Positions 1 through 15,806 of a DNA stretch of 64,000 nt are shown piece after piece (within the stretch, counting starts at the first letter, position 1; each line of letters begins with the position of its first letter). The notes below the pieces were generated by a model. That model saw only the letters and a program-made list of their open reading frames with translations. It searched no databases and was not told the origin of the DNA. The stretch comes from Obrimoposthia wandeli. Its lineage: Eukaryota. The stretch spans positions 1 to 64,000 of the forward strand of contig CDROCS010001622.1 in assembly GCA_977020255.1 (NCBI GenBank), read 5' to 3'. The translations under genes were made by a program, and so were the position numbers.

Positions 1-366
1 CATTAATTCTGAACTACCTTTAGTATTGTCATATAAATAAAATTTGTAAACAATTTCTAGATGTATTGGTTGCTCCTTTTTCTCTATAATACAATCAATT
101 TCACCTAAAGTTATTTTATTATTTTGAATTTGACAATTTTCTGAAAGAATTTTAATGCCTTCTTGTTGTTTTAACAAATGGCTTACAAATCGCTCTACGC
201 GTTTTCCTAAACGTAACTTTTTTTCTATTGATTCATTAAATGGAGAAGAATCAATATTGGGTAACTCAAATTGTTTCAACCCGAAAATTATATCAGATTT
301 CCAAAGTAAAGACGTGTTTAAAAAACCTTGATATTGTAACTGTATGTCTTTCGAGTTTAAATCCAT
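1..366 (-). CDS. DUF1853 family protein (PD-(D/E)XK-like), truncated by window edge
   Basis: Not in the ORF track. Manual translation from ATG at 366 is open to the edge: MDLNSKDIQLQYQGFLNTSLLW...RLGKRVERFV...TLGEIDCII...HLEIVYKFYLYD, matching the RLGxxxE / GEIDC / HLExxYKFYL motifs of DUF1853. Confidence 0.8.
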   Translation of the reverse strand, partial: MDLNSKDIQLQYQGFLNTSLLWKSDIIFGLKQFELPNIDSSPFNESIEKKLRLGKRVERFVSHLLKQQEGIKILSENCQIQNNKITLGEIDCIIEKKEQPIHLEIVYKFYLYDNTKGSSELM

Positions 367-523
367 GACTTGAGCTAAGTTACATTTTTTTAATTTCGAA
401 CGCGTATATTGATGAATATATTAGGAGTGACATTATTTTTTCTAAATTAATTAATTTGAACTGTAATTTCAGAAACTTTTTTCGTACTAACTAAAAATTA
501 AAATTGTAAAAAATCAAAACTAT

Positions 524-859
524 ATGTCAAAAACGTATTATGATCCAACTGATTTAAGAAAATTTGGAAAAATAACAGAATGGAGTGAAAAATTAGGAGA
601 GAAATTTTTTAGTTATTATAATAGTGTATTTGAAGAAGGCGCATTAACTGCTAGAGAAAAATCATTAATAGCATTAGCAGTTGCACATACAGAGCAGTGT
701 CCGTATTGCATAGATGCATATACAAAAGATGGTTTACAGCGAGGAGTTACAAAAGAAGAAATGATGGAAGCAATACATGTTGGTGCTGCAATTAAAAGTG
801 GTGCAACGTTAGTTCATGGAGTTCAAATGATGAATAAAGTGAATAAATTAGAGATGTAG
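524..859 (+). CDS. AhpD/CMD-like peroxidase-family protein, arsenosugar-cluster associated
   Basis: REKSLIALAVA...QCPYCID CxxC motif of the CMD/AhpD fold; 1 nt upstream of the ArsS-type radical SAM gene. Confidence 0.85.
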   Translation: MSKTYYDPTDLRKFGKITEWSEKLGEKFFSYYNSVFEEGALTAREKSLIALAVAHTEQCPYCIDAYTKDGLQRGVTKEEMMEAIHVGAAIKSGATLVHGVQMMNKVNKLEM

Positions 860-860
860 C

Positions 861-1916
861 ATGAGTTTAAAATCACTTAAAAAAACAGCCAATAAATTAG
901 CAGATAGTAGTAGGCAATTAGAAATTTTATCTAATGGAGTTTTTAAAAATGGAGAGTTACCAACTTTTAAAGAATCTTTGTCTTTAACAAATCAATTTCC
1001 TATAAAGGCTAAAAAGTTAGAAATTTTACAAATCAATTTAGGGTATATGTGCAATCAGGTTTGTGCACATTGCCATGTAGATGCTGGTCCAGACAGACAA
1101 GAAATTATGTCGAAGGAAACAATGCAGCAATGTTTAAACGTGATTGAAAATACAACTGCTCACACTTTAGATTTAACAGGTGGCGCTCCTGAGATGAACC
1201 CAAATTTTGAATGGTTTGTTGAGGAAGCATCAAAAATTGGAATTAATGATTTTATTGTAAGATCTAATTTAACAATTATTACTTCAAATAAAAAATATCA
1301 CCATTTACCTGAGTTTTTTAGAAAACACAATGTACATGTGGTTTCTTCAATGCCACATTGGACAAAAGGGAAAACCGATAAACAACGAGGTGATGGGGTT
1401 TTTAATAAATCCATAAAAGCTCTTGAAATGTTAAACGAAAAAGGATATGGTTTATCTAATTCTAATTTAAGATTAGATTTAGTGTACAATCCTTCAGGTG
1501 CATTTTTACCAGGAGATCAAAAGGGTTTAGAAATAAAATTTAAAAAAGCATTAAAAGAAGATTTTAATATTGAATTTCATAATTTGTTTGCAATTACAAA
1601 TTTGCCAATAAGCAGGTTTTTAGATTATTTATTAGCTTCAGATAATTATGAAGATTATATGACAGAGTTGGTTGATGCTTATAATTCGGAAGCTGTTAAA
1701 AATGTAATGTGTACTAATACAATTTCAATTAGCTGGGATGGTTGGTTGTACGATTGTGATTTTAATCAAATGTTAAATTTAAAAGTAGATAGTAAATCAA
1801 AACATATTAGTGAGTTTAATGAAGATTTATTAAATAATAGAACCATTATTACATCTCAACATTGCTATGGATGCACGGCGGGAACTGGAAGTAGTTGTCA
1901 AGGAACAGTAGTTTAA
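861..1916 (+). CDS. arsS: Arsenosugar biosynthesis radical SAM protein ArsS (TIGR04167-like, DUF3641 C-terminus)
   Basis: CNQVCAHC (CxxxCxxC), HVDAGP, LDLTGGAPE, DCDFNQM, C-terminal HCYGCTAGTGSSCQG. Confidence 0.9.
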   Translation: MSLKSLKKTANKLADSSRQLEILSNGVFKNGELPTFKESLSLTNQFPIKAKKLEILQINLGYMCNQVCAHCHVDAGPDRQEIMSKETMQQCLNVIENTTAHTLDLTGGAPEMNPNFEWFVEEASKIGINDFIVRSNLTIITSNKKYHHLPEFFRKHNVHVVSSMPHWTKGKTDKQRGDGVFNKSIKALEMLNEKGYGLSNSNLRLDLVYNPSGAFLPGDQKGLEIKFKKALKEDFNIEFHNLFAITNLPISRFLDYLLASDNYEDYMTELVDAYNSEAVKNVMCTNTISISWDGWLYDCDFNQMLNLKVDSKSKHISEFNEDLLNNRTIITSQHCYGCTAGTGSSCQGTVV

Positions 1917-1928
1917 TTTAAAAATTGT

Positions 1929-2429
1929 ATGAAGTTTTTTGTAATTTGTTTTTTTATAATAGCCAGTCAATTTTGTAGGGCTCAAGATTCCTTAAAAATA
2001 GTTTTAGACAACTATAATGATCATAGTGTACCTTATATTATGGTGGATAACTTAGCTAAAGAGAAAGGAAATGATATTGTTTTAATTGATGCTCGTGAAA
2101 TAAATGAATATGAAGTAAGCCATATAGATAAAGCAATTTTTGTAGGTTTTGAGAAGTTTAATATTAAAAGTGTATTAAGAAATATTAAAAATAAAAATAA
2201 AAAAATTGTAGTGTATTGTTCTTTAGGGATTAGATCTGAGATTGTTGCAAAAAAAATAATAGCAGCCGGATATAAAAATGTACACAATTTATACGGAGGT
2301 ATTTTTGAGTGGAGTAATTTCAATTTTCCTTTAATTAATTCAAAAGGAATTAAAACTAAAAGAGTACATACTTTTAATAAAGCTTGGAGTAAATGGTTGG
2401 TAAAGGGAAAAGGAGTATATGAAAAATAA
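1929..2429 (+). CDS. Rhodanese-like domain protein with N-terminal signal peptide
   Basis: LIDARE, YEVSHI, VVYCSLGIRS active loop, NLYGGIFEW; hydrophobic N-terminus ending CRA-QD. Confidence 0.85.
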   Translation: MKFFVICFFIIASQFCRAQDSLKIVLDNYNDHSVPYIMVDNLAKEKGNDIVLIDAREINEYEVSHIDKAIFVGFEKFNIKSVLRNIKNKNKKIVVYCSLGIRSEIVAKKIIAAGYKNVHNLYGGIFEWSNFNFPLINSKGIKTKRVHTFNKAWSKWLVKGKGVYEK

Positions 2430-3048
2430 AAATTTAGTAATAGTTTTTACTCGAAACCCAGAATTGGGTAAGGTAAAAAGTAGATTGGCCAGTGTTATTG
2501 GTAAAACAGCCGCTCTCAATATCTACAAAATATTATTGCTGCATACTGCTAAATCAATTAAAAATTTAACGTGTGATAAAGCAATTTATTATTCAGAAAA
2601 AATTAGAACAAATGATATTTGGAATGAAAGTTATTTAAAGTATAAACAAGAAGGTGAAGATTTAGGGATAAGAATGAAAAATGCTTTTAAAAAATCTTTT
2701 GAAAAAGGATATAAAAATGTTGTTATAATTGGTAGCGATTTAATTGATTTAACCCCAGAACATATAAATATTGCTTTTGAAAAATTAATGTATAATGATG
2801 TGGTTGTAGGTTCTGCAATGGATGGTGGTTATTATTTATTAGGCTTAAAAAAAGTACATAATCAAATTTTTGAAAATAAAAAATGGGGTACTTCGAGCGT
2901 TTTGAGAGAAACCTTGAGAAATTTAAATGGTTGTGAAATTGAATTTTTACAAGAATTAAATGATATTGATACTTACGAAGATTTAAAAAATAATAAGAAA
3001 TTAAAAGAATTAATAACAAATGATTACGAAATTAAAGGAGTCAGTTAA
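2419..3048 (+). CDS. TIGR04282/DUF2064 family transferase (CofC/MobA-like fold), arsenosugar-cluster associated
   Basis: FTRNPELGKVKSRL, QEGEDLGIRM, IIGSD, DGGYYLLG, LNDID motifs. Confidence 0.88.
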   Translation: MKNKNLVIVFTRNPELGKVKSRLASVIGKTAALNIYKILLLHTAKSIKNLTCDKAIYYSEKIRTNDIWNESYLKYKQEGEDLGIRMKNAFKKSFEKGYKNVVIIGSDLIDLTPEHINIAFEKLMYNDVVVGSAMDGGYYLLGLKKVHNQIFENKKWGTSSVLRETLRNLNGCEIEFLQELNDIDTYEDLKNNKKLKELITNDYEIKGVS

Positions 3049-3832
3049 ATTCATAGAAAATAAAGGTTTTTTAAATCCTGAAATTGGGATTGTTTTAGGT
3101 ACTGGATTAGGAAAATTAATTGATGAAATAGAAATACTTAAAGAGATAACTTACACAGAAATACCTCATTTTCCTGTGGCAACTGTAGAGTTTCATAAAG
3201 GAAAATTAATTTATGGAATTTTTGAAGGTAAAAAGGTTGTTGTAATGCAAGGTAGATTTCATTTGTATGAAGGCTATAATTTACAAGAAATTACCTATCC
3301 CATACGTGTTTTAGAAAAATTAGGGATTAAGAGTCTTTTAATATCAAATGCCGCTGGGGCAATTAATTTAAATTATAATAAAGGGGAATTAATGTTAATT
3401 GATGACCATATAAATTTACAAGGAGGTTCTCCTTTGGCATTTAAAGGTGTTGAAGTACTTGGAGAGCGATTTGTTGATATGTGCGAGCCTTATAATTTAG
3501 CCATGAACAATAAATTGCTAGCAATAGCTTCAGTAAATAATATAAAACTGCACAAAGGTGTTTATGCAAGTGTAATTGGCCCACATTTAGAAACAAAATC
3601 TGAATATAGGATGTTGAAAATTCTAGGAGCAGATGCTGTTGGTATGAGTACAGTTCCCGAAATTATTGTGGCAAATCAATTAAAACTTAATGTAATTGCG
3701 ATATCTGTATTGACTGATGAATGTGATCCCGACAATTTAAACCCTGTAAATATTCCTGAAATTATTAAAATGGCAGGAATGGCAGAACCCAACTTAATAA
3801 CACTATTTAAAGAATTAACTAAAAAATTATAA
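3020..3832 (+). CDS. Purine nucleoside phosphorylase (trimeric PNP-I family)
   Basis: GIVLGTGLG, HKGKL, MQGRFHLYEG, SNAAG, DHIN, GPHLET, DAVGMSTVPE. Confidence 0.93.
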   Translation: MITKLKESVKFIENKGFLNPEIGIVLGTGLGKLIDEIEILKEITYTEIPHFPVATVEFHKGKLIYGIFEGKKVVVMQGRFHLYEGYNLQEITYPIRVLEKLGIKSLLISNAAGAINLNYNKGELMLIDDHINLQGGSPLAFKGVEVLGERFVDMCEPYNLAMNNKLLAIASVNNIKLHKGVYASVIGPHLETKSEYRMLKILGADAVGMSTVPEIIVANQLKLNVIAISVLTDECDPDNLNPVNIPEIIKMAGMAEPNLITLFKELTKKL

Positions 3833-3836
3833 TGCA

Positions 3837-4805
3837 ATGGGATATTTAGAAACTACACATAACTTGTATAAAGAGGCCGCTTTAACACCAGATGTTGGTT
3901 TGTGTTGTACTACAAACCCTATATGGGAATTACCAGGATTAAAAATTCCTAAAATAATGCAGGAAATGAATTATGGTTGTGGTAGTACTGTGCATGCACG
4001 TGATTTAACAAATAATCCAAAAATGCTTTATGTTGGCGTTGGAGGAGGCATGGAATTATTACAATTTGCATACTTTAATCGTCAAAAAAATGGAGTTGTT
4101 GGACTTGATGTTGTAGATGAAATGTTAGACGCATCTCGTAAAAATTTTAAAGAGGCTGAAAAACAAAATTCTTGGTTTAAAAGCGAGTTTGTAGATCTTA
4201 AAAAGGGCGATGCTTTAAATTTACCAGTTGAAGATAATTCAATTGATGTGGCTGCTCAAAATTGCTTGTTCAATATATTTAAAGTGGATGATTTAAAGAA
4301 AGCGATTGCTGAAATGTATAGAGTGTTAAAACCACATGGTAAACTGGTAATGAGTGATCCAACTTGTGAACAACCAATGAGTGATGAATTAAGAAACGAT
4401 GAGCGTTTAAGAGCATTATGTTTAAGTGGCAGTATACCAATTTCAAAATATGTAAAAATGCTAACGGATGCTGGTTTTGGAACTATAGAAATTAGAGCCA
4501 GAAAACCATATAGAATTTTAGATCCTAAAAATTATGCTACAGATGAATTAATTTATATTGAATCTATTGAAGTGGCTGCAATTAAAGATCCAATGCCAAT
4601 TGATGGTCCTTGTATATTCACAGGTAAAGCAGCAATTTACTACGGGGATGAAGATTATTTTGATGATAAATTAGGACATGTTTTATATAAAAATCAACCT
4701 TTAGCTATATGTGATAAAACAGCGAAAGCATTAAATAACATTAATAAAAAGGAAATATTTATATCAGATTCAACGTATCATTATGATGGTGGTGGTTGCT
4801 GTTAA
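3837..4805 (+). CDS. arsM: Arsenite S-adenosylmethionine methyltransferase ArsM (arsenosugar-cluster type)
   Basis: GLCC, NYGCGS, YVGVGGG SAM motif I, GDALNLP, AQNCLFN, LRALCLSG, C-terminal GGGCC. Confidence 0.88.
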   Translation: MGYLETTHNLYKEAALTPDVGLCCTTNPIWELPGLKIPKIMQEMNYGCGSTVHARDLTNNPKMLYVGVGGGMELLQFAYFNRQKNGVVGLDVVDEMLDASRKNFKEAEKQNSWFKSEFVDLKKGDALNLPVEDNSIDVAAQNCLFNIFKVDDLKKAIAEMYRVLKPHGKLVMSDPTCEQPMSDELRNDERLRALCLSGSIPISKYVKMLTDAGFGTIEIRARKPYRILDPKNYATDELIYIESIEVAAIKDPMPIDGPCIFTGKAAIYYGDEDYFDDKLGHVLYKNQPLAICDKTAKALNNINKKEIFISDSTYHYDGGGCC

Positions 4806-4825
4806 TTATAGATTTTATTGCTAAA

Positions 4826-5713
4826 ATGAATATTGAAAAATATATTACACTTGTAGAAAATTCTTACAAAGGCTATTGGAATTATTTGTGGCAAGAAATT
4901 TTGTTTCAAAGTAATTGGAATAATTATTTTTATGGCTTAATATTAATCTCTTTGCTTGTTTGGGGCTTAGAAATTAAATTTCCTTGGAGAAAAAATCAAC
5001 CTATTTTTAGAGATGATTTTTGGATAGATTTATTTTATATGTTTTTCAATTTCTTTTTATTAAATCTAATAGTATTAATTGCATTGTCAAATGTAGCTAC
5101 TGCTTTTTTTAATGAGTTATTGGCAATTGGAGGATGGTCAATTGCTAATTTCCAATTGGTAGAATTAAACAATTTACCTGTAGTTTTAAGATTGCTATTG
5201 TTTTTTGTAATTACAGATTTTGTTCAATGGAATATTCATAAATTATTGCATACATTCCCTTTTTTATGGAGTTTTCATAAAGTCCACCATTCTATAAAAC
5301 AAATGGGTTTTGCTGGACATTTGAGGTATCATTGGTTAGAGCCTATAGTCTATAAATCATTATTATATATTCCTTTGGCAATTATAGGTGGATTTAATGT
5401 AAATGATGTGGCTTTTATTCATTTTTTCACTTTAATTATAGGTCATTTAAATCATGCTAATTTAGGTTGGGATTATGGATTGTTTAAATATATTTTTAAC
5501 AATCCTAAAATGCATATTTGGCATCATAGCAAAAAAATCCCCAATAAATATGGTGTTAATTTTGGAATTTCTTTAAGTATTTGGGATTATATTTTTAAAA
5601 CAAATTTTATACCTAAAAGTGGTAGAGATATAGTGTTAGGTTTTGATGGGGATGAAAGTTTTCCCAAAAGTTTTATTAGTCAAGAAATTATTCCATTTAA
5701 AAAAAAGTTTTAA
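4826..5713 (+). CDS. Sterol desaturase / fatty acid hydroxylase family membrane protein
   Basis: His boxes HKLLH, HKVHH, HLNH, HIWHH and several TM segments. ATG at 4826 preferred over the track's TTG at 4796, which lies inside arsM. Confidence 0.85.
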   Translation: MNIEKYITLVENSYKGYWNYLWQEILFQSNWNNYFYGLILISLLVWGLEIKFPWRKNQPIFRDDFWIDLFYMFFNFFLLNLIVLIALSNVATAFFNELLAIGGWSIANFQLVELNNLPVVLRLLLFFVITDFVQWNIHKLLHTFPFLWSFHKVHHSIKQMGFAGHLRYHWLEPIVYKSLLYIPLAIIGGFNVNDVAFIHFFTLIIGHLNHANLGWDYGLFKYIFNNPKMHIWHHSKKIPNKYGVNFGISLSIWDYIFKTNFIPKSGRDIVLGFDGDESFPKSFISQEIIPFKKKF

Positions 5714-6975
5714 AAATATTGACCAACGCCAAAAACAAAACCTCGTTTTGAATTATCTTTTAAACTTTGACCATAGTCAATTCTTAAAATTGCATTGAAT
5801 ATTTTTTTATGAATAAATCGTAAACCAACTCCTGAAAATAATTGAATGTTTTTATGGTTTACAAAATCATTTAATTTACCACCAGGATTTCTCCAAGAAC
5901 CAGCATCTATAAATGCATTACCTTGTAATGAAAACCATTTTTTTTCGAATATAGTAAGCCTATATTCACTGTTTAATACAATGCTACCAGTTCCACGGTC
6001 AACTAAAATACCAACACCTCTTAAATTTACATTATTATCTAACGAAAATGGAGCAAAGGGAGTTTCATTATTACTCGCTAATCCAGCTCTTATTCTATTT
6101 GCCCAATTTCCTTTTGTACCAACTCTTTTATAATAGAAAAAATCGTTCCAAGCGATATAAAAATTTTCTTGATTTTGCTGTTTAGATTTTACTATTTGAC
6201 CATAAAACTGACTTTTAAAGCCATTAATATATTGATAATGATATTTTAAGTTATCATGGGTGTAAATAAATTTAAGTAATATTTTATTTAAGTTTAAATT
6301 TAGAGGAATCTTAGAAGAGGTGATACCTTTTACATAGTTGTATTTCTCTTTAAAAAAATTAAAACCAAACTCAAAACTATTTTTTGAATCTGTTTCAAAT
6401 AAACCTAAAACTTCAAAAGAAACATTGTTATAGGTGTACTGCGCAACTCCTTTATTAAAATATAAAGGTTCTTCACTTTTCCAATTTTGATGATTTATTG
6501 CGAGACCTATTTTATTTGAGAATAAATGAGGTGCTCTAAAATTAAGGGCATAAGTATTATGGCCGTTATTTTGATAAAAACCACCAAAGCCAATGTTTTT
6601 ACCCAAAAAATTGTAATCATAAACACCAACTTTATAAGCAACTTTACTTTTGTTATTGGACCAAAAATTTACTACAGGTATAATTGTGAAGTTTTCTTCA
6701 AGATTAAACTGAAGTAAATAAGAATTATTTTTTAAATGTATTATTTGATAAGAGGCATGAGATATAGCAGGTAATCTTTTTAATTTTTTAAGATCTTTTT
6801 CAAATGCTAAACTATCTATTTTAACACCTGGCTTAGATTGCACCACCTTAATTAAATATTTTGTAGATGTTTTTTTGTTTCCACTAAAGGCTATTTTTAG
6901 TATTGTTTTTTCTTGAGAAAAAATAGATGAAGAAATACATAAAAAGATTAAAATAAAAAGAAATTTAAAATTCAT
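5710..6975 (-). CDS. Omp85/BamA-TamA-like outer membrane protein with one POTRA domain
   Basis: Signal peptide, FSGNKKTS POTRA start, NLRGVG, FIDAGS, LRIDYG, C-terminal Phe (GVGQYF). Confidence 0.75.
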   Translation of the reverse strand: MNFKFLFILIFLCISSSIFSQEKTILKIAFSGNKKTSTKYLIKVVQSKPGVKIDSLAFEKDLKKLKRLPAISHASYQIIHLKNNSYLLQFNLEENFTIIPVVNFWSNNKSKVAYKVGVYDYNFLGKNIGFGGFYQNNGHNTYALNFRAPHLFSNKIGLAINHQNWKSEEPLYFNKGVAQYTYNNVSFEVLGLFETDSKNSFEFGFNFFKEKYNYVKGITSSKIPLNLNLNKILLKFIYTHDNLKYHYQYINGFKSQFYGQIVKSKQQNQENFYIAWNDFFYYKRVGTKGNWANRIRAGLASNNETPFAPFSLDNNVNLRGVGILVDRGTGSIVLNSEYRLTIFEKKWFSLQGNAFIDAGSWRNPGGKLNDFVNHKNIQLFSGVGLRFIHKKIFNAILRIDYGQSLKDNSKRGFVFGVGQYF

Positions 6976-7004
6976 TAGAAATAAAAAAAAAGTTTATTAA
7001 ATAA

Positions 7005-7012
7005 CAAACTTA
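7005..7012 (-). promoter_or_regulatory. Bacteroidota sigma-A -7 element (TAAGTTTG) for the Omp85-like gene
   Basis: caaactta on the + strand, 30 nt upstream of the start codon. Confidence 0.55.
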
Positions 7013-7140
7013 ACCTAATTAAATTTATTTACAATGCTATAATAAAGTTTAAGCTTTAATATTAACTGGTTAAATTATAATGATAGTGAATGCTTTAAGG
7101 TAATAGTACGTGTTTTTACAGCAGAAATATGGGGTGCTCT

Positions 7141-7182
7141 AAAAAAAAACTTCACCAAACGATTCTATTCAATTTGATGAAG
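7141..7182 (-). terminator. Intrinsic terminator after the 7223-8119 gene
   Basis: Minus strand CTTCATCAAA-13 nt loop-TTTGGTGAAG followed by a T9 run. Confidence 0.75.
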
Positions 7183-7222
7183 TTGTATTAAATTATTAAA
7201 AATAATATGAGAATATTTTATC

Positions 7223-8119
7223 TTATTTTGTTAGTAAATATCTTAATCCTAAATTAAATGTTTGCCCTAATCCATTATCGCGACCTCTTACAAATTTGCC
7301 ATAAGAAACTTCTAAGTTTAGCGCATTGTTTAATTGATATTTACCCCCAAAACCAAGTAGTGAATAATTTTGTGAAAAATCATTTCCTAAATCAAGTAAT
7401 TCATAATGTTGTGCATTTACAAATACGGTAAAATTATTTGAAGGAAAATAACTTAAGAATACACTTAGCGGAACTGCTAAACTATTGTTTGCAAACCTTT
7501 CTGAGCTGTTTTCATTTGAATTTGCTTCTGTTTTTTTCTCTCCAAAGTTATAGGTGAAATCTAGTTCTGCAAAAAACTGATATTTACCGGCACCAAAAGT
7601 AGTATCGTAAAATAGTTTGTTTTCAAAAGCATAACTTCTTTTATCTAAATATAAATTAGGTTGATCTTTAAAAACCGGAATGTAAAAAGTATTTTGAATA
7701 GAAAAATTTGAAATATTTTTAAAAGGTTGTGTTTTAATACTTAACCCAATATTAGACAAGCCACTTCTAGAATCTATATTGTTATTTTTAAAAGAAAGTA
7801 CGCTAGTTGCACTTTGATCTTCAAAAGTATTGGACTTGTAATTTAAGATTAAACCTATATTTACTCTAGAGTTTTTAGATACGCCTGTATAGGTTTCTAA
7901 AGTAGTCGTAAAAAAACTACTTCTATCACCACTTATGGTTTTTCCATTATCATCGCGTTTTGTTTGGGTGTACAAATTATTAAATAATTTAAAATCCCAA
8001 TCCCCATTTTTTAATAATTTAGAAGGGGTATATTTTTGAATATTACTTTTAGTTGTTTCTTGTGAATAGGTTATTAATGAAAAAACGATGGCTACTAATG
8101 TTATTATTTTTTGTCTCAT
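7223..8119 (-). CDS. Putative outer-membrane beta-barrel protein, function unknown
   Basis: Signal peptide, alternating aromatic/hydrophobic beta-strand pattern, ends TFNLGLRYLLTK. Confidence 0.65.
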   Translation of the reverse strand: MRQKIITLVAIVFSLITYSQETTKSNIQKYTPSKLLKNGDWDFKLFNNLYTQTKRDDNGKTISGDRSSFFTTTLETYTGVSKNSRVNIGLILNYKSNTFEDQSATSVLSFKNNNIDSRSGLSNIGLSIKTQPFKNISNFSIQNTFYIPVFKDQPNLYLDKRSYAFENKLFYDTTFGAGKYQFFAELDFTYNFGEKKTEANSNENSSERFANNSLAVPLSVFLSYFPSNNFTVFVNAQHYELLDLGNDFSQNYSLLGFGGKYQLNNALNLEVSYGKFVRGRDNGLGQTFNLGLRYLLTK

Positions 8120-8147
8120 TCTGTTTATTTTTTGATTTTAGTATATA

Positions 8148-8867
8148 TTATTGTTTGTTTAATTTCCAGTTATAAGTGAAATAGGTTAATTTATAATTGT
8201 TGGGTATTTTTTCTATTCTATATTTATTTATAAAATCTATTTCTTTTGTACCATTTAGGGTGAAATCTTCTTTGTACCATTTTAATATTTCTGAACCAAT
8301 TATTCTCTTCTTTTTGATGTTAATTTTTATAAAATAATTACCATTTAAAGCAAGTTTAGTTTGTTCTTCTAGTTGAGTCTCAAGTGTGTTAGGTAAGTAT
8401 GCTTTATTTATTATTGGAGGGCAGCCAATAGCTCCGCAAACCAGTACAAAATGAAAACGTGGATCTTTAAAATTAGCTCTTAAAAAGGTGTTTTCAATAT
8501 TATTTAAGGTAGTTTTAGTTCCTCCTATATTATAAGTTATTTTATCAAAAAAACCTGATATATCTAAAGGAGAATTGGTGGGGTAATTATTTATAATACC
8601 TTTTATAACGCTTAAATTGTAAGAGTTAATCCAAAAAGCTTTGTATACAGCCATGTTGGTTTTATCAACTTTTATATTTTTTGAAAGTTCTAATAACTCA
8701 TTTAAAGAATGGGGATTCTTGTAAATTGATGCATAATCAATTTTTCCATTTGAAACATTTAAGCTGAAAAAGGTAGAAGTTTTTTCAAAAAAGGAATCTA
8801 TATTTTGAGCTTTAGATTGAGTTTGTATCGTATATATAACAAATAATGTTAAAAGGATTTTTTTCAT
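8148..8867 (-). CDS. DUF547 domain-containing exported protein
   Basis: KAFWINSYN, TLNNIE, DPRFHFVLVCGAIGCP motifs; signal peptide. Confidence 0.88.
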   Translation of the reverse strand: MKKILLTLFVIYTIQTQSKAQNIDSFFEKTSTFFSLNVSNGKIDYASIYKNPHSLNELLELSKNIKVDKTNMAVYKAFWINSYNLSVIKGIINNYPTNSPLDISGFFDKITYNIGGTKTTLNNIENTFLRANFKDPRFHFVLVCGAIGCPPIINKAYLPNTLETQLEEQTKLALNGNYFIKINIKKKRIIGSEILKWYKEDFTLNGTKEIDFINKYRIEKIPNNYKLTYFTYNWKLNKQ

Positions 8868-9027: not shown

Positions 9028-10326
9028 ATGGAACATATTGTAATTATAGGTAATGGTATTTCTGGTGTAACAGTTGCGCGTCATATTCGTAAAAAATCGG
9101 ATAAACGAATTACTATTATTTCTGCTGAATCTAAATTCTTTTTTTCAAGAACCGCTTTAATGTATGTATATATGGGACATTTAAAGTTTGAGCATACTCA
9201 GCCCTATGAAAATTGGTTTTGGGAAAAAAATAATATAGCATTAAAAGAAGGTTTGATTATAAAAGTTGAAACTGATACTAAAAAATTACTTTTAGAAAAC
9301 GGAGAAGTGCTGAATTATGACAAGTTAATTATAGCAACTGGTAGCCAACCGAATAAATTTGGATGGCCTGGTCAAGATTTAAAAGGTGTACAAGGATTAT
9401 ATAGTAAACAAGATTTAGAAAATTTAGAAAATTACGCGCCAAACAATACTATATGTAAACATGCTGTAATTGTTGGAGGTGGTTTAATAGGTATTGAACT
9501 TGCAGAAATGCTTAGAAGTAGAGCTATCGCTGTAACTTTTTTAATTCGTGAAGCTGGTTTCTGGAGGGGTGTTTTACCCAAAGAAGAAAGCGATATGATT
9601 GGTAGACATATTGAAGAACATCATATTGATATGAAACTTAGTTCAAATTTAAAAGAAATAATTTCAGATGAAAATGGAAAGGTTAAGGCTGTTGTTGTTG
9701 TAGAAACTGGAGAAACTATTCCTTGTGATTTTGTAGGGCTAACTGCCGGTGTTTCACCAAATATAAATTTTTTAAAATCATCAAATATTAATACAAATAG
9801 AGGTGTATTGGTAAATAAATTTTTAGAAACCAATATTAAAGATGTATATGCAATTGGTGATTGTGCAGAGCAGCATGTGGCAATAGGAGAAAGACGACCT
9901 GTTGAAGCTGTGTGGTATACGGGAAGAATGATGGGAGAAACTTTAGCACAAACAGTTTGTGGTAATAAATTAGAGTACAAACCTGGTAATTGGTTTAATT
10001 CAGCTAAGTTTTTAGATATTGAGTATCAAACATACGGTTGGGTTTGGCCAAATCCAAAAGAAAATGAAGAGCATTTTTACTGGGAACACGCAAAAAATAA
10101 TATATGTTTAAGATTTAATTACAATAAAATATCTAGACAGTTTTTGGGTGTAAATACCTTTGGAATTAGAATGCGACATGATGTTATGGACAATTGGCTT
10201 ACAAACCATAAATCTATAGATTATGTAATTTCTCATCTTACAGAAGCAAATTTTGATCCAGAGTTTTATAAACGTTTTGAGAAGGAGATTTCAATTTTAT
10301 TTAAAAAACAATTAGCAACGGCTTAA
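9028..10326 (+). CDS. FAD/NAD(P)H-dependent pyridine nucleotide-disulfide oxidoreductase family protein
   Basis: IIGNGISG FAD motif, ATGS, IVGGGLIGIELAE NADH motif, VYAIGDCA. Confidence 0.88.
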   Translation: MEHIVIIGNGISGVTVARHIRKKSDKRITIISAESKFFFSRTALMYVYMGHLKFEHTQPYENWFWEKNNIALKEGLIIKVETDTKKLLLENGEVLNYDKLIIATGSQPNKFGWPGQDLKGVQGLYSKQDLENLENYAPNNTICKHAVIVGGGLIGIELAEMLRSRAIAVTFLIREAGFWRGVLPKEESDMIGRHIEEHHIDMKLSSNLKEIISDENGKVKAVVVVETGETIPCDFVGLTAGVSPNINFLKSSNINTNRGVLVNKFLETNIKDVYAIGDCAEQHVAIGERRPVEAVWYTGRMMGETLAQTVCGNKLEYKPGNWFNSAKFLDIEYQTYGWVWPNPKENEEHFYWEHAKNNICLRFNYNKISRQFLGVNTFGIRMRHDVMDNWLTNHKSIDYVISHLTEANFDPEFYKRFEKEISILFKKQLATA

Positions 10327-10335
10327 ATTATAATT

Positions 10336-11748
10336 ATGAATAAAAATTCAAGTTTCTCAATTTCAAATCCACAAAAATTAAAATTAGATGCTATCCAAAA
10401 AATAGGCTTAGTGTTAGTAATGATTGGGTTATCTGTATTGGTATTAGCTTTTTTTGGAATTACCTTTAAGTACCCAACAGTTTTTTTAACTATTGCAATA
10501 AGCTTAATTTTTGGAGGTACAGTAATTTACGCTCAACAAACTTATTTATTACAACCAAAAGGTATAAAAAACAATTTTGTTTGGTTTAACACTTTATCCA
10601 ATAGAGGTGTTTTTGGTTGGTTGTTAGGTATTGTACTAACGCTGTTTTATGTATTGTTATATTGGTTTCCTAAATATTTAGGCTTTGATTCAAATGGCAT
10701 TTCTAATAGTGGTTTAGTTGCATTGTTTGATCCTTTAAGTTTATTTTTTAAAGGGAAAATAGCGAGTCAATGGTTTGTGTATGGAACATTATACACGTTA
10801 CTTATTACTTCATTAGGAATAAAATTTATTTTTAAGTATAGGCATAACCGATATCAGATAATTAGAACAATAGTAGTTATAGTTTCACAGTTATTTTTAG
10901 CCTATTTAATTCCTGAAATTTTAGAAGGGTTAAATTCAGACTTACCTTATTTTTCAAAAGACATTAAAAATATGTGGCCTTTAAACTATTACTTTTTTGA
11001 GCCTTGGCATATCGATAATATGAAAAATGGAGGAACTTTAGGTATGTTTTATTTAGTTTCAGGTATATTTATGTTCTTAGTTTTTACACCCATTATAACT
11101 TATTACGTAGGAAAACGTTGGTATTGCTCATGGATTTGTGGATGTGGAGGTTTAGCAGAAACTGCAGGGGATTCATTTCGTCAGTTATCGTCTAAAACAT
11201 TGTCATCATGGAAAATTGAACGCTGGATGATTCATATAGTTATGGTATTAGTTTTTATTGTAACCGCAGTAGTTTTATATGGGTATTTTACAAATACCGG
11301 TGAGTTTTTAGGATTAAGTATTTATAATTATTTTAGTAAACCTTATGGTTTTGTTATTGGAGCAATGTTTTCTGGAGTTGTTGGTGTAGGGTTTTACCCA
11401 ATTTTAGGAAGTCGAATTTGGTGTAGATTTGGTTGCCCTTTGGCTGGGTATATGGGGTTATTTCAACGTTTTAAATCTCGATTTAGAATAACAACAAATG
11501 GAGGTCAGTGTATTTCTTGTGGAAATTGCTCAACTTATTGTGAACAAGGGATTGATGTTAGAGCTTATGCACAAAAAGGAGAAAATATTGTTAGAGCAAG
11601 TTGTGTTGGATGTGGAATTTGTTCAGCGGTATGTCCTAGAGGTGTATTAAAACTTGAAAACGGAGAAGAAAAAGGACGTATTAATCCAACCGATGTTTTA
11701 TTAGGTAATGATGTTGATTTAATGAATTATGTGAATAAAAATAAATAA
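10336..11748 (+). CDS. Polytopic membrane 4Fe-4S protein (NapH/MauN/NosR-like)
   Basis: Many TM helices, YCSWICGCG and WCRFGCP motifs, two ferredoxin motifs CISCGNCSTYC and CVGCGICSAVC. Confidence 0.88.
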   Translation: MNKNSSFSISNPQKLKLDAIQKIGLVLVMIGLSVLVLAFFGITFKYPTVFLTIAISLIFGGTVIYAQQTYLLQPKGIKNNFVWFNTLSNRGVFGWLLGIVLTLFYVLLYWFPKYLGFDSNGISNSGLVALFDPLSLFFKGKIASQWFVYGTLYTLLITSLGIKFIFKYRHNRYQIIRTIVVIVSQLFLAYLIPEILEGLNSDLPYFSKDIKNMWPLNYYFFEPWHIDNMKNGGTLGMFYLVSGIFMFLVFTPIITYYVGKRWYCSWICGCGGLAETAGDSFRQLSSKTLSSWKIERWMIHIVMVLVFIVTAVVLYGYFTNTGEFLGLSIYNYFSKPYGFVIGAMFSGVVGVGFYPILGSRIWCRFGCPLAGYMGLFQRFKSRFRITTNGGQCISCGNCSTYCEQGIDVRAYAQKGENIVRASCVGCGICSAVCPRGVLKLENGEEKGRINPTDVLLGNDVDLMNYVNKNK

Positions 11749-11761
11749 TAATATTTATATT

Positions 11762-12259
11762 TTGAAGAAAGGAATGATTAAACAGTTTTTAATTAGAGTT
11801 TTAGTTGTGATTGGATTCCAATTTTTAGGGCTAAATTCATTTGCTCAAGATATTGAATATAAAAAAAGTTATTATAACAATGGCGTTTTAAAATCGGAGG
11901 GATGGATTGAAAATAACTTGAAAAAAGGGTATTGGAAATTTTATTATTCTAACGGTAATAAAGAAAAAGAAGGAAGATTTAAAAAAGGTTTAGAGAATAA
12001 ATATTGGTTCTATTTTAAAGACAATAAAAATAAATTAAAAGAAGGACATTTTGTTAGCGGTCAAAAAAATGATTGGTGGATTATTTATGCGACCTCTAAT
12101 TCCATTGATGAAAAAATTCAATATAAAAACAATAAAAAAAATGGCTATTGTTTGTGTTATAAAAAAAACAAATTGGTTAAAATAGAACGATTTACAAATG
12201 ATATTAAGGAAGGCGAATGGACAGATTTAAAAAAATTTAAGAAAGAAAATAAATTTTAA
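11762..12259 (+). CDS. MORN-variant repeat (YwqK-like) exported protein
   Basis: Repeated KGxWxxYYxNGxxxxEG units; signal peptide; ATG at 11774 is a possible alternative start. Confidence 0.75.
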   Translation: MKKGMIKQFLIRVLVVIGFQFLGLNSFAQDIEYKKSYYNNGVLKSEGWIENNLKKGYWKFYYSNGNKEKEGRFKKGLENKYWFYFKDNKNKLKEGHFVSGQKNDWWIIYATSNSIDEKIQYKNNKKNGYCLCYKKNKLVKIERFTNDIKEGEWTDLKKFKKENKF

Positions 12260-12945
12260 TGATAATAAAAGTTATTATACCTGCTTTTAATGAGCAAGAT
12301 TCAATTACTAATGTAATTAGTGAAATACCAAATTTAGTTAATGAGATTATTGTAGTAAATAATAACTCAACGGATGCTACAGAAAATAAAGCAAAACAAG
12401 CTGGGGCAACAGTATTAAATGAAGTTAGAAAAGGTTATGGTTATGCATGTTTAAAAGGAATTCATTATATTAATGAACAAAAAATAAAACCAGATATTGT
12501 TGTGTTTTTAGATGGAGATTATAGTGATTATCCTGAAGATTTAACGGAAATTATTGATCCTATTTCAGCTGAAAATATAGATTTTGTTATTGGATCTAGA
12601 GTAGCTCGTTTAAGAGAAAGTGGCTCTATGACTCCTCAACAAATTTTTGGCAATTGGTTAGCAACTAGTTTAATGCGTGTTATGTTTAAAGCTAATTTTA
12701 CAGATTTAGGTCCTTTTAGAGCTATAAAATATAATAAGCTAATAGCTTTAAACATGGAAGATAAAACTTATGGATGGACCGTAGAAATGCAATTAAAAGT
12801 TCTAAAAAGTAAATTGTCCTATGTAGAAGTACCCGTGAGGTATAAAAAGCGAATTGGAGTGTCTAAAGTTTCTGGTACAATACAAGGATCTGTTATGGCA
12901 GGAATTAAAATTTTAGGTTGGATTTTTAAATACAGTTTTAAATAA
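12259..12945 (+). CDS. GT2 glycosyltransferase, polyprenol-phosphate sugar synthase (DPM1-like)
   Basis: VIIPAFNE, NNSTD, GYGYACLKG, FLDGD, FVIGSR, TDLGPFRA, YGWTVEMQ, RIGVSK. Confidence 0.85.
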   Translation: MIIKVIIPAFNEQDSITNVISEIPNLVNEIIVVNNNSTDATENKAKQAGATVLNEVRKGYGYACLKGIHYINEQKIKPDIVVFLDGDYSDYPEDLTEIIDPISAENIDFVIGSRVARLRESGSMTPQQIFGNWLATSLMRVMFKANFTDLGPFRAIKYNKLIALNMEDKTYGWTVEMQLKVLKSKLSYVEVPVRYKKRIGVSKVSGTIQGSVMAGIKILGWIFKYSFK

Positions 12946-14435
12946 TGATTATAGAAACTATACTAATTGTAATTTACTCAATTTCTTTGTTGCTAATATT
13001 TTTATATGCACTAGCACAATTAAATTTATTAATTAATTACATTTCGGCAAAAAAAAATAAGGATGAGAGTCCTAAATTTGATTTTTCAAATAAAAATGAA
13101 ATTCCTTTTGTAACTATTCAACTTCCGGTATATAATGAGTTATATGTTATGGAAAGACTTTTAGAGAACATATCTAAAATAGATTATCCTAAAGATAGGT
13201 TTGAAATTCAGGTTTTAGATGATTCTACAGATGAATCTGTTTCTTTAACTTTAAAACTTATAAAAAAATTAAAAGCTTTAGGTTTAAATGTATATCATAT
13301 TACTCGAAAAGATAGAGTAGGTTTTAAAGCAGGTGCACTTAAAGAGGGATTGAATACCGCTAAAGGTGAATTTATAGCAATTTTTGATGCAGATTTTCTT
13401 CCTAAGCCAGATTGGTTAAATTGTACAATTCCATATTTTAAGGATACAAAAATTGGTGTTGTGCAAACTCGCTGGGGACATATAAATAGAAATTATTCAA
13501 TTTTAACAAAAATTCAAGCTTTTGCGTTGGATGCTCATTTTACTTTAGAACAAGTTGGGCGAAATAGTAAAGGTCATTTTATAAATTTTAATGGTACGGC
13601 CGGTGTATGGAGAAAAACATGTATAATTGATGCCGGTAATTGGGAAGGAGATACTTTAACAGAAGATTTAGATTTAAGTTATAGAGCCCAACTTAAAAAT
13701 TGGAAATTTAAGTATTTAGAGCATGTTGAAACTCCAGCAGAATTGCCTGTTGTTATCAGCGCAGCAAAAACCCAACAATTTAGATGGAATAAAGGTGGGG
13801 CTGAAAATTTTAGAAAAATGTTGCTCAAAATAATAAAGAGTGATAATATACCTCTAAAAACAAAAGTACATGGTGTTTTACATTTGTTAAATAGTACCAT
13901 GTTTTTAAATATTTTTATAGTTGCTGTTTTAAGTATTCCAATGCTTTACTTGAAAAATGAATATGCACATTTAAAAATATATTTTTATGTCATGAGTTTC
14001 TTTGTAGTTAGTACCATAATATTTTTTATTTGCTATTGGTTTATGTATAAAAGTATTTATGGAAGTAGCTTTAAAAGTTTTATAAATTACATTACCATGT
14101 TTTTTACTTTTTTTTCAATAGCAATGGGATTTTCGCTACATAATTCAATAGCAGTTTTAGAAGGTCATTTAGGAAAAAGAAGTGAATTTGTTAGAACTCC
14201 AAAATTTAATATAAATAGTTTAAAAGATTCTTGGAAAGGAAATAAATACATAAAAAACAAACTGTCTCTAAATGTGTTTATTGAAGGTTTACTAACGTTA
14301 TATTTTGCATTTGGAATGTATAGTGCTTTTATTGTAGGAGATCAGGGTGGCGATTTTGGATTATTTCCCTTTCATTTTATGTTATTTTGTGGGTTTGGCT
14401 ATGTGTTTTTGAAATCAATTACTTCTAAAATTTAA
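12945..14435 (+). CDS. Processive GT2 (cellulose synthase-like, CslA/C type) membrane glycosyltransferase
   Basis: QLPVYNE, QVLDDSTD, GFKAGAL, IFDAD, TEDLDLS, QQFRW (D,D,D,QxxRW) and C-terminal TMs. Confidence 0.9.
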   Translation: MIIETILIVIYSISLLLIFLYALAQLNLLINYISAKKNKDESPKFDFSNKNEIPFVTIQLPVYNELYVMERLLENISKIDYPKDRFEIQVLDDSTDESVSLTLKLIKKLKALGLNVYHITRKDRVGFKAGALKEGLNTAKGEFIAIFDADFLPKPDWLNCTIPYFKDTKIGVVQTRWGHINRNYSILTKIQAFALDAHFTLEQVGRNSKGHFINFNGTAGVWRKTCIIDAGNWEGDTLTEDLDLSYRAQLKNWKFKYLEHVETPAELPVVISAAKTQQFRWNKGGAENFRKMLLKIIKSDNIPLKTKVHGVLHLLNSTMFLNIFIVAVLSIPMLYLKNEYAHLKIYFYVMSFFVVSTIIFFICYWFMYKSIYGSSFKSFINYITMFFTFFSIAMGFSLHNSIAVLEGHLGKRSEFVRTPKFNINSLKDSWKGNKYIKNKLSLNVFIEGLLTLYFAFGMYSAFIVGDQGGDFGLFPFHFMLFCGFGYVFLKSITSKI

Positions 14436-14459
14436 ATTGAGTATTTATATTCATTAATA

Positions 14460-15806
14460 ATGAAAGATAGTATAAAAAATAATTACATACCGTTAATTTT
14501 AGCAGCTATAATTGGTTTTTTGTATTTACAATTTGCCTATGATTTAGAAAGAACTTCCTACGGGAAATTATTGATATTATACACTGGTTTGTTTTTATTA
14601 ACGTATAAATTAATAGAACTATCAAAAGATAATTTTAAGTTATTAGTTGTCTTTTCAATTATAATAAGACTCTTATTTTTGTTCGCTATTCCAAATTTAT
14701 CACAAGATTTTTATCGTTTTATTTGGGATGGTAGAATGATTTTGGAAGGAGTAAATCCTTATTTGTTCACTCCAGAATCTTTTATGCAGAATAATGTTTT
14801 ACCTGTTGAGCAATCAATTGAGTTGTATAATGGTATGGGAACTTTAAACGGAAGTCATTTTACAAACTATCCTCCAGTAAATCAGTTTTGTTTTATGCTT
14901 GCAAGCTTATTTAATAATAGCAGTATCTTAGGGTCTGTAATTGTTTTGAGAGTTCTTATAATTTTAGCAGATTTAGGGATTTTGTATGTTGGTTTAAAAT
15001 TGCTAAAAAGTTTAAAATTATCTAAATATAATATTTTTTTATATGCATTAAATCCATTTGTTATAATTGAACTTACTGGAAATCTTCATTTCGAAGGAAT
15101 AATGATTTTCTTTTTAATTTGGAGCATGTATCTTCTTTATCAAAATAAGTGGAAATGGGCAGCAGTACTATTTGCATTATCTGTTTCAACAAAATTAATT
15201 CCTTTAATATTTTTGCCGTTATTATTTCAAAAATTAAGATTGAAAAAAAGTATAGGTTTTTATAGTATTGTTATATTTATAAACGTGATGCTTTTTTTAC
15301 CGTTTTTCACAATAGGTTTTGTTGATAATTATTTGAAAACTGTAGGTTTATGGTTTCAAAATTTTGAATTTAATGCAAGTCTATATTATATAGCCAGAGA
15401 AATTGGATATTTATTTCGTGGTTATAATGAAATCGCTATAATTGGTAAAGTTATACCACTAATTGTGGTAATTTTTGTTGTGATAATTACATTTTTAAGA
15501 AGAAATAAATCATTTATAGAATTATTTTCAGCAATGCTTTTGGTATTGTCTTTTTATTATTTTACTGCAACAACAGTGCATCCGTGGTATATAGCCTTAC
15601 TTTTAATAATAACAATTTTTACAAAATATAGATTTCCTGTAGTTTGGAGTTTTATTATTATAGTTAGCTATTTGGCTTATGCTAGTTCTAATAATAAAGA
15701 AAATTTGTGGTTAATTGCTATTGAATATTTAGTGGTCTATGGTTATTTTGTGTACGAATTATTTATAAAAAAACACAAACTTAAAAGTAGCTTTTACTAT
15801 ATTTAA
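14460..15806 (+). CDS. GT-C fold lipid-phosphosugar-dependent transferase (GT87/DUF2029, mannosyltransferase-like)
   Basis: SQDFYRFIWDG first-loop acidic motif, NYPP, NPFVIIELTGNLHFE, HPWY, many TM helices. Confidence 0.78.
   Translation: MKDSIKNNYIPLILAAIIGFLYLQFAYDLERTSYGKLLILYTGLFLLTYKLIELSKDNFKLLVVFSIIIRLLFLFAIPNLSQDFYRFIWDGRMILEGVNPYLFTPESFMQNNVLPVEQSIELYNGMGTLNGSHFTNYPPVNQFCFMLASLFNNSSILGSVIVLRVLIILADLGILYVGLKLLKSLKLSKYNIFLYALNPFVIIELTGNLHFEGIMIFFLIWSMYLLYQNKWKWAAVLFALSVSTKLIPLIFLPLLFQKLRLKKSIGFYSIVIFINVMLFLPFFTIGFVDNYLKTVGLWFQNFEFNASLYYIAREIGYLFRGYNEIAIIGKVIPLIVVIFVVIITFLRRNKSFIELFSAMLLVLSFYYFTATTVHPWYIALLLIITIFTKYRFPVVWSFIIIVSYLAYASSNNKENLWLIAIEYLVVYGYFVYELFIKKHKLKSSFYYI

Follow-up and report, generated by a model that had tools for sequence, protein, structure and literature searches.

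A seven-gene operon at positions 524–5713 of a 64,000-nucleotide stretch of DNA (positions 1 to 64,000 of contig CDROCS010001622.1, assembly GCA_977020255.1, deposited as Obrimoposthia wandeli; hereafter the window) brings together genes for the arsenic-methylating protein ArsM, the radical S-adenosylmethionine (SAM) protein ArsS and five accessory proteins. As judged from its sequences, the operon likely makes an arsenoribosyl product, a 5-deoxy-5-dimethylarsinoyl-ribose compound, derived from 5′-deoxy-5′-dimethylarsinoyl-adenosine (DDMAA). The source organism is a marine, heterotrophic, Lutibacter-like flavobacterium. The operon is real, conserved and of an already named and widespread kind, and its gene content differs from that of the only characterized system as well as from the families that NCBIfam names for this kind. 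Six of its proteins score above curated NCBIfam cut-offs (TIGR04169, TIGR04167, NF045521, TIGR04282, NF006054 and NF038099), and NCBIfam labels four of the seven as proteins of arsenosugar biosynthesis.

The operon and its ArsM-ArsS core

As shown by homology, the window ArsM is predicted to methylate As(III) to dimethylarsenite, and ArsS to add the SAM-derived 5′-deoxyadenosyl radical to dimethylarsenite, yielding DDMAA. Adenosylation of dimethylarsenite to DDMAA by ArsS has been reported (PMC13598754), and arsS of Synechocystis, which is transcribed together with arsM, provides the first committed step (bioRxiv 10.1101/2022.09.23.509062). The window ArsS exceeds the equivalog cut-off of its family (Table 1), contains the CX3CX2C radical SAM motif and ends in a Cys-rich DUF3641 domain. 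In an alignment of 47 sequences, taken from representatives at 50% identity, the motif cysteines C64, C68 and C71 as well as C284, C299, C335 and C338 are invariant. The window ArsM is distant from the structurally solved ArsM proteins (63 bits to CmArsM), and its cysteines in the motifs YGCGST, QNCLFN and ALCLSG align with C72, C174 and C224 of CmArsM. No counterpart of CmArsM C44 was aligned in the window protein, in which a CC pair at residues 23–24 could be a candidate for that role.

The first gene of the operon encodes an AhpD-like protein, which scores above the TIGR04169 cut-off and carries a CPYC motif, in agreement with the CxxC or UxxC that characterizes this family. The gene adjoins arsS in 75 of the 80 loci compared below, and its product is likely a thiol-disulfide redox partner of ArsM and ArsS, which would recycle the thiol or disulfide state of both enzymes. 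Natural fusions of the ArsS-ArsM, ArsM-ArsS and ArsS-CMD types were found, and NCBIfam includes an ArsM-AhpD fusion family (NF041537); these fusion proteins argue for a functional link among ArsS, ArsM and the AhpD-like protein. As a separate observation, a Nitrospirota contig (L116) holds three ArsS-family paralogues in one locus, one of them fused to a CMD/AhpD domain, with neither ArsM nor a glycosyltransferase nearby, and the chemistry of the ArsS family may accordingly be wider.

The seven genes are co-directional on the plus strand, in the order AhpD-like protein, ArsS, rhodanese, TIGR04282 protein, purine nucleoside phosphorylase (PNP), ArsM and fatty acid (FA)-hydroxylase-family protein, and are separated by 1, 12, −11, −29, 4 and 20 nucleotides in open reading frame (ORF) coordinates. 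These distances take ATG 4826 as the start of the seventh gene; the ORF list gives TTG 4796, and the ATG is favored because the homologues span 292–302 amino acids and it yields a protein of 295. Gaps of at most 20 nucleotides and the absence of an internal terminator fit a single transcript for the seven genes, the only terminator-like site found by a terminator scan being located within the 3′ end of the last gene. Upstream of the operon the exact Bacteroidota −7 motif TAnnTTTG was not found, a sigma-70 scan returned 50 promoter-like sites against 46 in shuffled sequences, no better than the shuffles, and a search of sequencing runs gave no confirmed RNA run covering the region, but only the probable source DNA run and one of a relative.

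This layout is not confined to the window. Lutibacter citreus and L. oricola have ArsS proteins with 87–88% identity to that of the window, and their DNA is ∼77–78% identical to it over the region; in both species the seven genes recur in unchanged order, and the same convergent POTRA gene comes next. Since these two species share the layout and most of the gene order recurs across the Flavobacteriaceae, the seven-gene arrangement is not a product of chance or assembly. The GC content of the cluster (0.25–0.33) is the same as that of its surroundings.

Domain scans covered all 64 non-overlapping ORFs of at least 70 amino acids in the window, each in Pfam and/or NCBIfam. None of them encodes ArsR, ArsC, Acr3 or ArsB, the genes by which a classical ars resistance operon would be recognized. 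The one transporter of the SBF family (38536–39438, minus strand) was considered as Acr3 and rejected, since BASS/PanS models match it and Acr3 does not. The preliminary description of this DNA, made from the sequence alone, had reported the tight coupling of the seven genes, the lack of ArsR, ArsC and Acr3/ArsB, and an ArsM-ArsS operon for arsenosugar-type organoarsenicals in a heterotrophic flavobacterium. The gap values are identical once ATG 4826 is used, the scan of the 64 ORFs bears out the second statement, and the HMM (hidden Markov model) scores above the cut-offs support the third. The phrase 'no detox or regulatory genes' holds within 64 kb and carries little weight as an argument, since no more than 64 kb are covered.

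Around ArsS, relatives of which occur in at least 598 species genomes, we surveyed one genome per species and compared the neighborhoods of the best 80 loci, all from Bacteroidota, counting neighbors within flanks of up to 10 kb on each side (Table 1; individual loci are numbered with the prefix L). The operon of most Flavobacteriaceae has two further genes, the first for a DUF547 protein that is a lipoprotein or exported and the second for a TIGR04283 glycosyltransferase of the GT2 family. Neither is found in this operon or in the Lutibacter layout. The cluster-type DUF547 is absent from the whole window, and the best TIGR04283 match in the 64-kb window reached 32.6 bits against a cut-off of 182 (the GT2 at 12259–12945), so that TIGR04283 beside TIGR04282, the pairing of the NCBIfam arsenosugar gene set, does not occur in the window. 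As an observation in its own right, a phosphate, or possibly arsenate, transporter of the PiT/PHO4 family lies right after ArsM inside the cluster in six loci (for example L121:7984–8988), and none is present in the window. Eight loci contain an insert with a SusC/SusD pair, a sodium:solute-symporter-like protein and a metallophosphoesterase (L009:11897–18816 and seven others), located between ArsS and the rhodanese-TIGR04282-PNP genes or, in L018, upstream of AhpD-ArsS; its presence hints that uptake or the cleavage of phosphodiesters may be connected with the pathway.

Candidate enzymes for the steps after DDMAA

Beyond DDMAA we infer a mechanism in which the PNP would split DDMAA by phosphorolysis into adenine and arsenoribose-1-phosphate, the TIGR04282 protein would join arsenoribose-1-phosphate to a nucleotide to give a nucleoside diphosphate (NDP)-arsenoribose, and a GT2 enzyme would transfer the arsenoribose. 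In most relatives this last enzyme would be the operon-encoded TIGR04283 protein, and here its candidates lie in the region 9028–15806. If the GT2 is an inverting enzyme and its donor an alpha-linked NDP-ribofuranose, the products would be beta-ribosides, as in natural arsenosugars. The exported rhodanese and DUF547, and the membrane hydroxylase, would act on the envelope side or on lipid.

The PNP belongs by sequence to the broader PNP (PunA) family. It falls below the cut-off of the 6-oxopurine-specific PNP-I family (TIGR01700, 271.5 against 293.35 bits) and far below that of MTAP (TIGR01694, 81.1 against 274.85 bits). In human PNP, Asn243 selects 6-oxopurines and His257 binds the 5′-OH, and the Asn243Asp form of the human enzyme is an adenosine-accepting PNP. 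Alignments with 4lna and 8swu place Asp233 and Ile245 of the window protein at these two positions. Like MTAP and the human Asn243Asp enzyme, the window PNP therefore has an acidic residue at the base-recognition position and a hydrophobic one at the position of the 5′-OH ligand, a combination that would fit a 5′-substituted adenosine whose 5′ position bears a bulky group other than hydroxyl. It differs from MTAP in its family and in that the signature is present in unlinked relatives too. The Asp/Ile signature was also considered as a mark specific to arsenic clusters and rejected, as unlinked relatives and PDB 4lna have Asp and a hydrophobic residue as well.

Among genome and metagenome loci with enough flanking DNA, all PNP relatives of at least 56% identity reside in an ArsS-type cluster, and those of at most 55% are unlinked to such clusters, with one exception (L092). 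PNP lies within 400 nucleotides of TIGR04282 in 38 of 40 loci, reversed orders included, and the pairing is kept despite reversal of the gene order (L058, L068) and strand inversion (L053).

The TIGR04282 protein combines a score above the family cut-off with a predicted fold like that of nucleotide-diphospho-sugar transferases. Its sequence matches PDB 3cgx (2.5e-28), and its AlphaFold2 (AF2) model (mean predicted confidence, pLDDT, 90.9) superimposes best on this structure of its own family (template-modelling (TM) score 0.84), followed by CofC, 3-phospho-D-glycerate guanylyltransferase and FbiD (TM 0.62–0.69) and then by cytidylyltransferases. CofC and FbiD, from F420 biosynthesis, and 3-phospho-D-glycerate guanylyltransferase are thus the best fold matches among characterized enzymes, with a weak match to the CofC HMM (8e-9). 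Because the fold resembles these CofC/FbiD guanylyltransferases, a role in sugar-phosphate activation is suggested, and the protein probably acts as a nucleotidyltransferase on arsenoribose-1-phosphate. Enzymes of the CofC/FbiD type join a nucleoside triphosphate to a phosphorylated small molecule, forming a diphosphate-linked nucleotide conjugate, and the chemistry proposed here would be of the same type; they differ in that their identity to the TIGR04282 protein is only 15–21% and in that the proposed substrate is a sugar-1-phosphate. Separately, a second, divergent TIGR04282-like gene (226 amino acids, 108.8 bits against the cut-off of 134) was observed at L009:11127–11807 and in ∼15 other loci, in many of them after ArsS or before the AhpD-like gene; the window has none.

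The rhodanese is of the sulfurtransferase type and exported. An N-terminal signal peptide and a CS[LIV]G[IV]RS loop are kept in essentially all full-length orthologues recovered. We considered it as an arsenate reductase of the Acr2/Cdc25 type and rejected this assignment, given its signal peptide and its loop C97-SLGI-R102, which is CX4R and not (H)CX5R; the same two features make a cytoplasmic reductase role unlikely. The last protein of the operon displays four His boxes (H138KLLH, H151KVHH, H207LNH and H230IWHH) and hydrophobic segments, and its substrate is presumably a lipid. Assignment to the ornithine-lipid hydroxylase OlsE (NF052566) was rejected at 96.3 bits against 475, so that superfamily membership alone is retained. 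Its gene keeps a place in the cluster through rearrangements, after ArsM, after PNP or after PHO4. In Polaribacter sp. KT 15 (L119) an orthologue stands beside a type I restriction-modification system, with no other cluster gene within 9 kb on either side, as though an insertion had separated it from the rest of the cluster.

In the preliminary description, the accessory genes were to supply reduction, deadenylation, activation and lipidation. Synteny and active-site residues support PNP for deadenylation, and synteny and predicted fold support TIGR04282 for activation. Reduction by the rhodanese is unlikely for the reasons just given, and the case for lipidation by the hydroxylase is weak, this protein being of an oxidase/desaturase type and not a lipid transferase, and found in the cluster in 16 of the 80 loci.

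A linked second operon and the cell envelope

Some 160 nucleotides from a minus-strand block (5710–8867), and in the opposite direction, begins a second operon (9028–15806), which probably supplies glycosyl transfer and reductant. It encodes a pyridine-nucleotide-disulfide-family oxidoreductase as candidate electron source, a membrane polyferredoxin, an exported protein, two GT2 proteins and a polytopic GT-C-like protein (Table 1). The small GT2 may replace the missing TIGR04283.

Genes of the second operon were found in the ArsS flanks of 17 of the 80 loci, as well as in L. oricola (L082) and in the non-Bacteroidota locus L115; Olleya and Aquimarina share the same overall layout. The two are directly joined in Salegentibacter (L040, L043), where AhpD, ArsS, TIGR04282, PNP, reductase, polyferredoxin, both GT2 and GT-C form nine contiguous co-directional genes, the reductase following PNP directly and the GT-C closing the array in L040. 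In Cesiribacter (L077) the second-operon block lies directly upstream of AhpD-ArsS-TIGR04282, and in L053 it is inverted. L115, a metagenomic contig with a distant ArsS, has CMD-ArsS with a GT2/MptA_B fusion, DUF2064, a Pyr_redox/Fer4 fusion and DUF547 nearby. On account of these arrangements, the link with the second operon is not tied to one gene order. Two further distant contexts show ArsS with rhodanese, DUF2064, GT2 and DedA/VTT membrane proteins. The seven genes of the preliminary description do not make up the whole unit: their operon lacks TIGR04283 and the linked DUF547, and a second operon is genomically linked to it.

The gene content points to an envelope-directed, possibly lipid-linked, fate of the sugar. 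In polyprenyl-phosphate sugar pathways a GT2 of the Dpm1/GtrB/AglJ type works with GT-C proteins such as MptA/MptB or the decaprenyl-phospho-arabinose transferases; likewise, the second operon pairs a small GT2 with a GT-C-like protein, and GT2 and GT-C are fused in the non-Bacteroidota ArsS locus. The second operon differs from those pathways in that its GT-C protein is matched only weakly (E-values 1e-6 to 1e-8) and the connection with arsenic is one of gene neighborhood alone. We know of no lipid-linked arsenosugar. One may tentatively, and with doubt, extend the proposal so that marine Bacteroidota would load arsenoribose from the NDP-sugar onto polyprenyl phosphate by means of the small GT2, flip it, and attach it through the GT-C to an envelope lipid or glycan. 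In that scheme, taken as a whole rather unlikely, the exported rhodanese and DUF547, with its His and CX4C, would tailor the arsenic center in the periplasm, for instance from oxo to thio, and the membrane di-iron hydroxylase would prepare the lipid acceptor.

The minus-strand block between the two operons contains three genes. That of the POTRA protein occupies the same position in seven of the numbered loci, and that of the exported 298-amino-acid protein, possibly an outer-membrane beta-barrel, adjoins DUF547 in four. The window DUF547 is a paralogue (34% identity) of the one found inside the cluster in other genera, with His139 and C144-x4-C149 invariant in the alignment; DUF547-VTT fusions exist. 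Its AF2 model (pLDDT 92.4) gave no meaningful PDB match in Foldseek (best E-value 2.6), and VIA-align returned unrelated helical proteins (best Z 6.0). Far from these genes, two adjacent minus-strand ORFs (41958–42347 and 42394–42900) correspond to the C-terminal and the N-terminal half of Pfam Phenol_MetA_deg; a frameshift or stop may have divided a single gene for an outer-membrane channel.

Table 1. Features of the window and their occurrence near ArsS in the 80 loci compared
Feature	Position	Strand	Evidence	Loci near ArsS
AhpD/CMD-like CxxC protein, TIGR04169	524..859	+	191.6 bits (cut-off 120); C59-P-Y-C62	75/80
ArsS, radical SAM, TIGR04167	861..1916	+	436.9 bits (cut-off 300); DUF3641 1.3e-54	
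Exported single-domain rhodanese, sulfurtransferase-type, putatively periplasmic	1929..2429	+	NF045521, 189.4 bits (cut-off 145); loop C97-SLGI-R	32/80
TIGR04282/DUF2064, probable nucleotidyltransferase	2419..3048	+	204.6 bits (cut-off 134)	48/80
Trimeric-type PNP, candidate DDMAA phosphorylase	3020..3832	+	NF006054, 326 bits (cut-off 218)	42/80
Arsenosugar-type ArsM, NF038099	3837..4805	+	571.5 bits (cut-off 400)	35/80
Membrane di-iron FA-hydroxylase/sterol-desaturase-family protein, 295 aa	4826..5713	+	Pfam FA_hydroxylase 1.2e-25	16/80
Cluster-type DUF547				28/80
TIGR04283 GT2				27/80
Divergent intergenic region, presumed promoter region	366..523	.	between DUF1853-like gene and operon	
DUF1853-like gene	starts 366, runs leftward off the window	-	frame 0 open from 366; DUF1853 at same position in Lutibacter relatives	
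POTRA-domain exported outer-membrane protein, convergent with operon	5710..6975	-	Pfam POTRA 1.5e-4; signal peptide	
Exported 298-aa protein	7223..8119	-	signal peptide; no Pfam/NCBIfam match	
Exported DUF547 protein	8148..8867	-	Pfam DUF547 4.1e-26	
Pyr_redox_2 FAD/NAD(P)H pyridine-nucleotide-disulfide-family oxidoreductase, candidate electron source	9028..10326	+	1e-51	15/80 (homologues)
NapH/MauN-like membrane polyferredoxin	10336..11748	+	TIGR02163 4.7e-16; Fer4 domains; seven predicted hydrophobic segments; co-located with ArsS clusters	
Exported 165-aa protein	11762..12259	+	signal-peptide-like N-terminus; no confident family match	
Small GT2 of AglJ/PpgS/Dpm1 kind, polyprenyl-phosphate-glycosyltransferase-like	12259..12945	+	Glycos_transf_2 1.3e-21; AglJ 2.1e-35; PpgS 9.5e-20	10/80 (orthologues)
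Membrane processive-type GT2, PgaC/CelA-like	12945..14435	+	Glyco_tranf_2_3 1.4e-22; PgaC 9.1e-32; CelA 1e-31; linked to ArsS clusters	
Polytopic GT-C-like protein, GT87/MptA/MptB-like, polyprenol-phosphate-sugar dependent	14460..15806	+	Pfam GT87 6.8e-6; MptB 1.3e-7; ten hydrophobic segments	

Alternative explanations and biological meaning

Several observations weigh against synthesis of an arsenoribosyl product by this operon. Because TIGR04283 is not in the window, no enzyme is assigned here to the last transfer; no more than about half of the loci have ArsM within 10 kb of ArsS, and three non-Bacteroidota ArsS contexts lack it; the PNP signature, common to unlinked relatives, is not arsenic-specific; and much of the synteny in Flavobacteriaceae could be inherited gene order and not selected linkage.

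That the organism makes organoarsenicals 'on purpose' rather than by way of detoxification, as the preliminary description proposed, is a conjecture that goes beyond the sequence. The operon might instead be a detoxification branch only, turning As(III) into less toxic arsenosugar-type compounds of no physiological use to the cell, which would leave the chemistry unchanged. Such is the usual description of organoarsenical formation (bioRxiv 10.1101/2024.02.01.577332; PMC12159101), but arsS mutants of Synechocystis are not sensitive to arsenite (bioRxiv 10.1101/2022.09.23.509062), the cluster has no ArsR-type regulator and is conserved across hundreds of marine species with a link to envelope glycosyltransferases, and six loci hold the PiT/PHO4 transporter within it. 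We consider mere detoxification unlikely; the mutants, the marine conservation, the glycosyltransferase link and the transporter loci mildly favor a physiological use.

It is a good deal less probable that ArsM, ArsS and the AhpD-like protein alone act on arsenic, the remaining genes and the downstream operons being inherited neighbors that work in nucleoside salvage or in building the envelope. Relatives of the PNP that share its active-site signature do occur outside any ArsS cluster, the hydroxylase is an infrequent member of the cluster and stands apart from it in Polaribacter sp. KT 15, and the compared loci come mostly from one family. Yet the TIGR04282-PNP pairing survives the reversals and the inversion described above, the hydroxylase keeps its position through rearrangements, the second operon is joined to ArsS genes in three different arrangements, and ArsS is accompanied by TIGR04282, GT2, rhodanese and DUF547 outside Bacteroidota as well. 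About equally improbable is that the Bacteroidota substrate is selenium or sulfur, ArsS adenosylating methylated species of these elements to a different 5-substituted ribose: by their NCBIfam names the ArsS and AhpD-like families have selenoprotein members, the cluster holds a rhodanese of the sulfur/selenium-transfer type and ArsM is missing near many ArsS genes, but the operon ArsM has the cysteines that bind As(III) and falls in an NCBIfam family specific to arsenosugars, ArsS scores far above its equivalog cut-off, and the only ArsS tested uses dimethylarsenite (PMC13598754).

Synthesis of a DDMAA-derived arsenoribosyl product is thus the reading that we retain, and it can be set against two known systems. 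The arsM-arsS genes of Synechocystis sp. PCC 6803, reportedly described as arsenosugar genes by Xue et al. in 2019 and Cheng et al. in 2021, likewise encode ArsM and ArsS together, with the radical SAM motif, the Cys-rich C-terminal domain and DDMAA as the expected first product; they differ in being a co-transcribed gene pair of a phototroph, in contrast to a seven-gene operon with a linked glycosyltransferase/reductase operon in a heterotroph. With the arsenosugar neighborhood named by NCBIfam (TIGR04167, TIGR04169, TIGR04282, TIGR04283, NF038099 and NF045521) the operon shares five of the six families, adjacent and above cut-off. It differs in that the window has neither TIGR04283 nor the DUF547 of the cluster type found before TIGR04283 in 28 loci, and in that PNP, hydroxylase and second operon are outside the named set.

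A 2025 review cites cyanobacteria as the sole bacterial producers of arsenosugars (PMC12159101), and the literature searched held nothing relevant on the accessory genes or on a Bacteroidota arsenosugar producer. New here are the PNP clade that is almost always beside TIGR04282 and carries the Asp/Ile active-site replacements; the predicted TIGR04282 fold like that of the CofC/FbiD guanylyltransferases; the recognition of the rhodanese as exported, of the CX4R sulfurtransferase type and not Acr2-like; an operon that lacks TIGR04283 and the linked DUF547; and the second operon linked to ArsS clusters and joined to them in some genomes.

For the steps of arsenosugar and arsenolipid synthesis that follow DDMAA, these data offer a candidate phosphorylase, a candidate nucleotidyltransferase, candidate glycosyltransferases, and redox and envelope proteins, each of which can be tested singly. 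Provided that the cluster is active, the marine organoarsenic pool, so far credited to algae and phytoplankton, would also be fed by common marine flavobacteria that live in association with algae. Should the lipid-linked scheme prove true, abundant heterotrophs would do more than release free arsenosugars, and would have been overlooked as a source of arsenosugars or arsenolipids in the sea.

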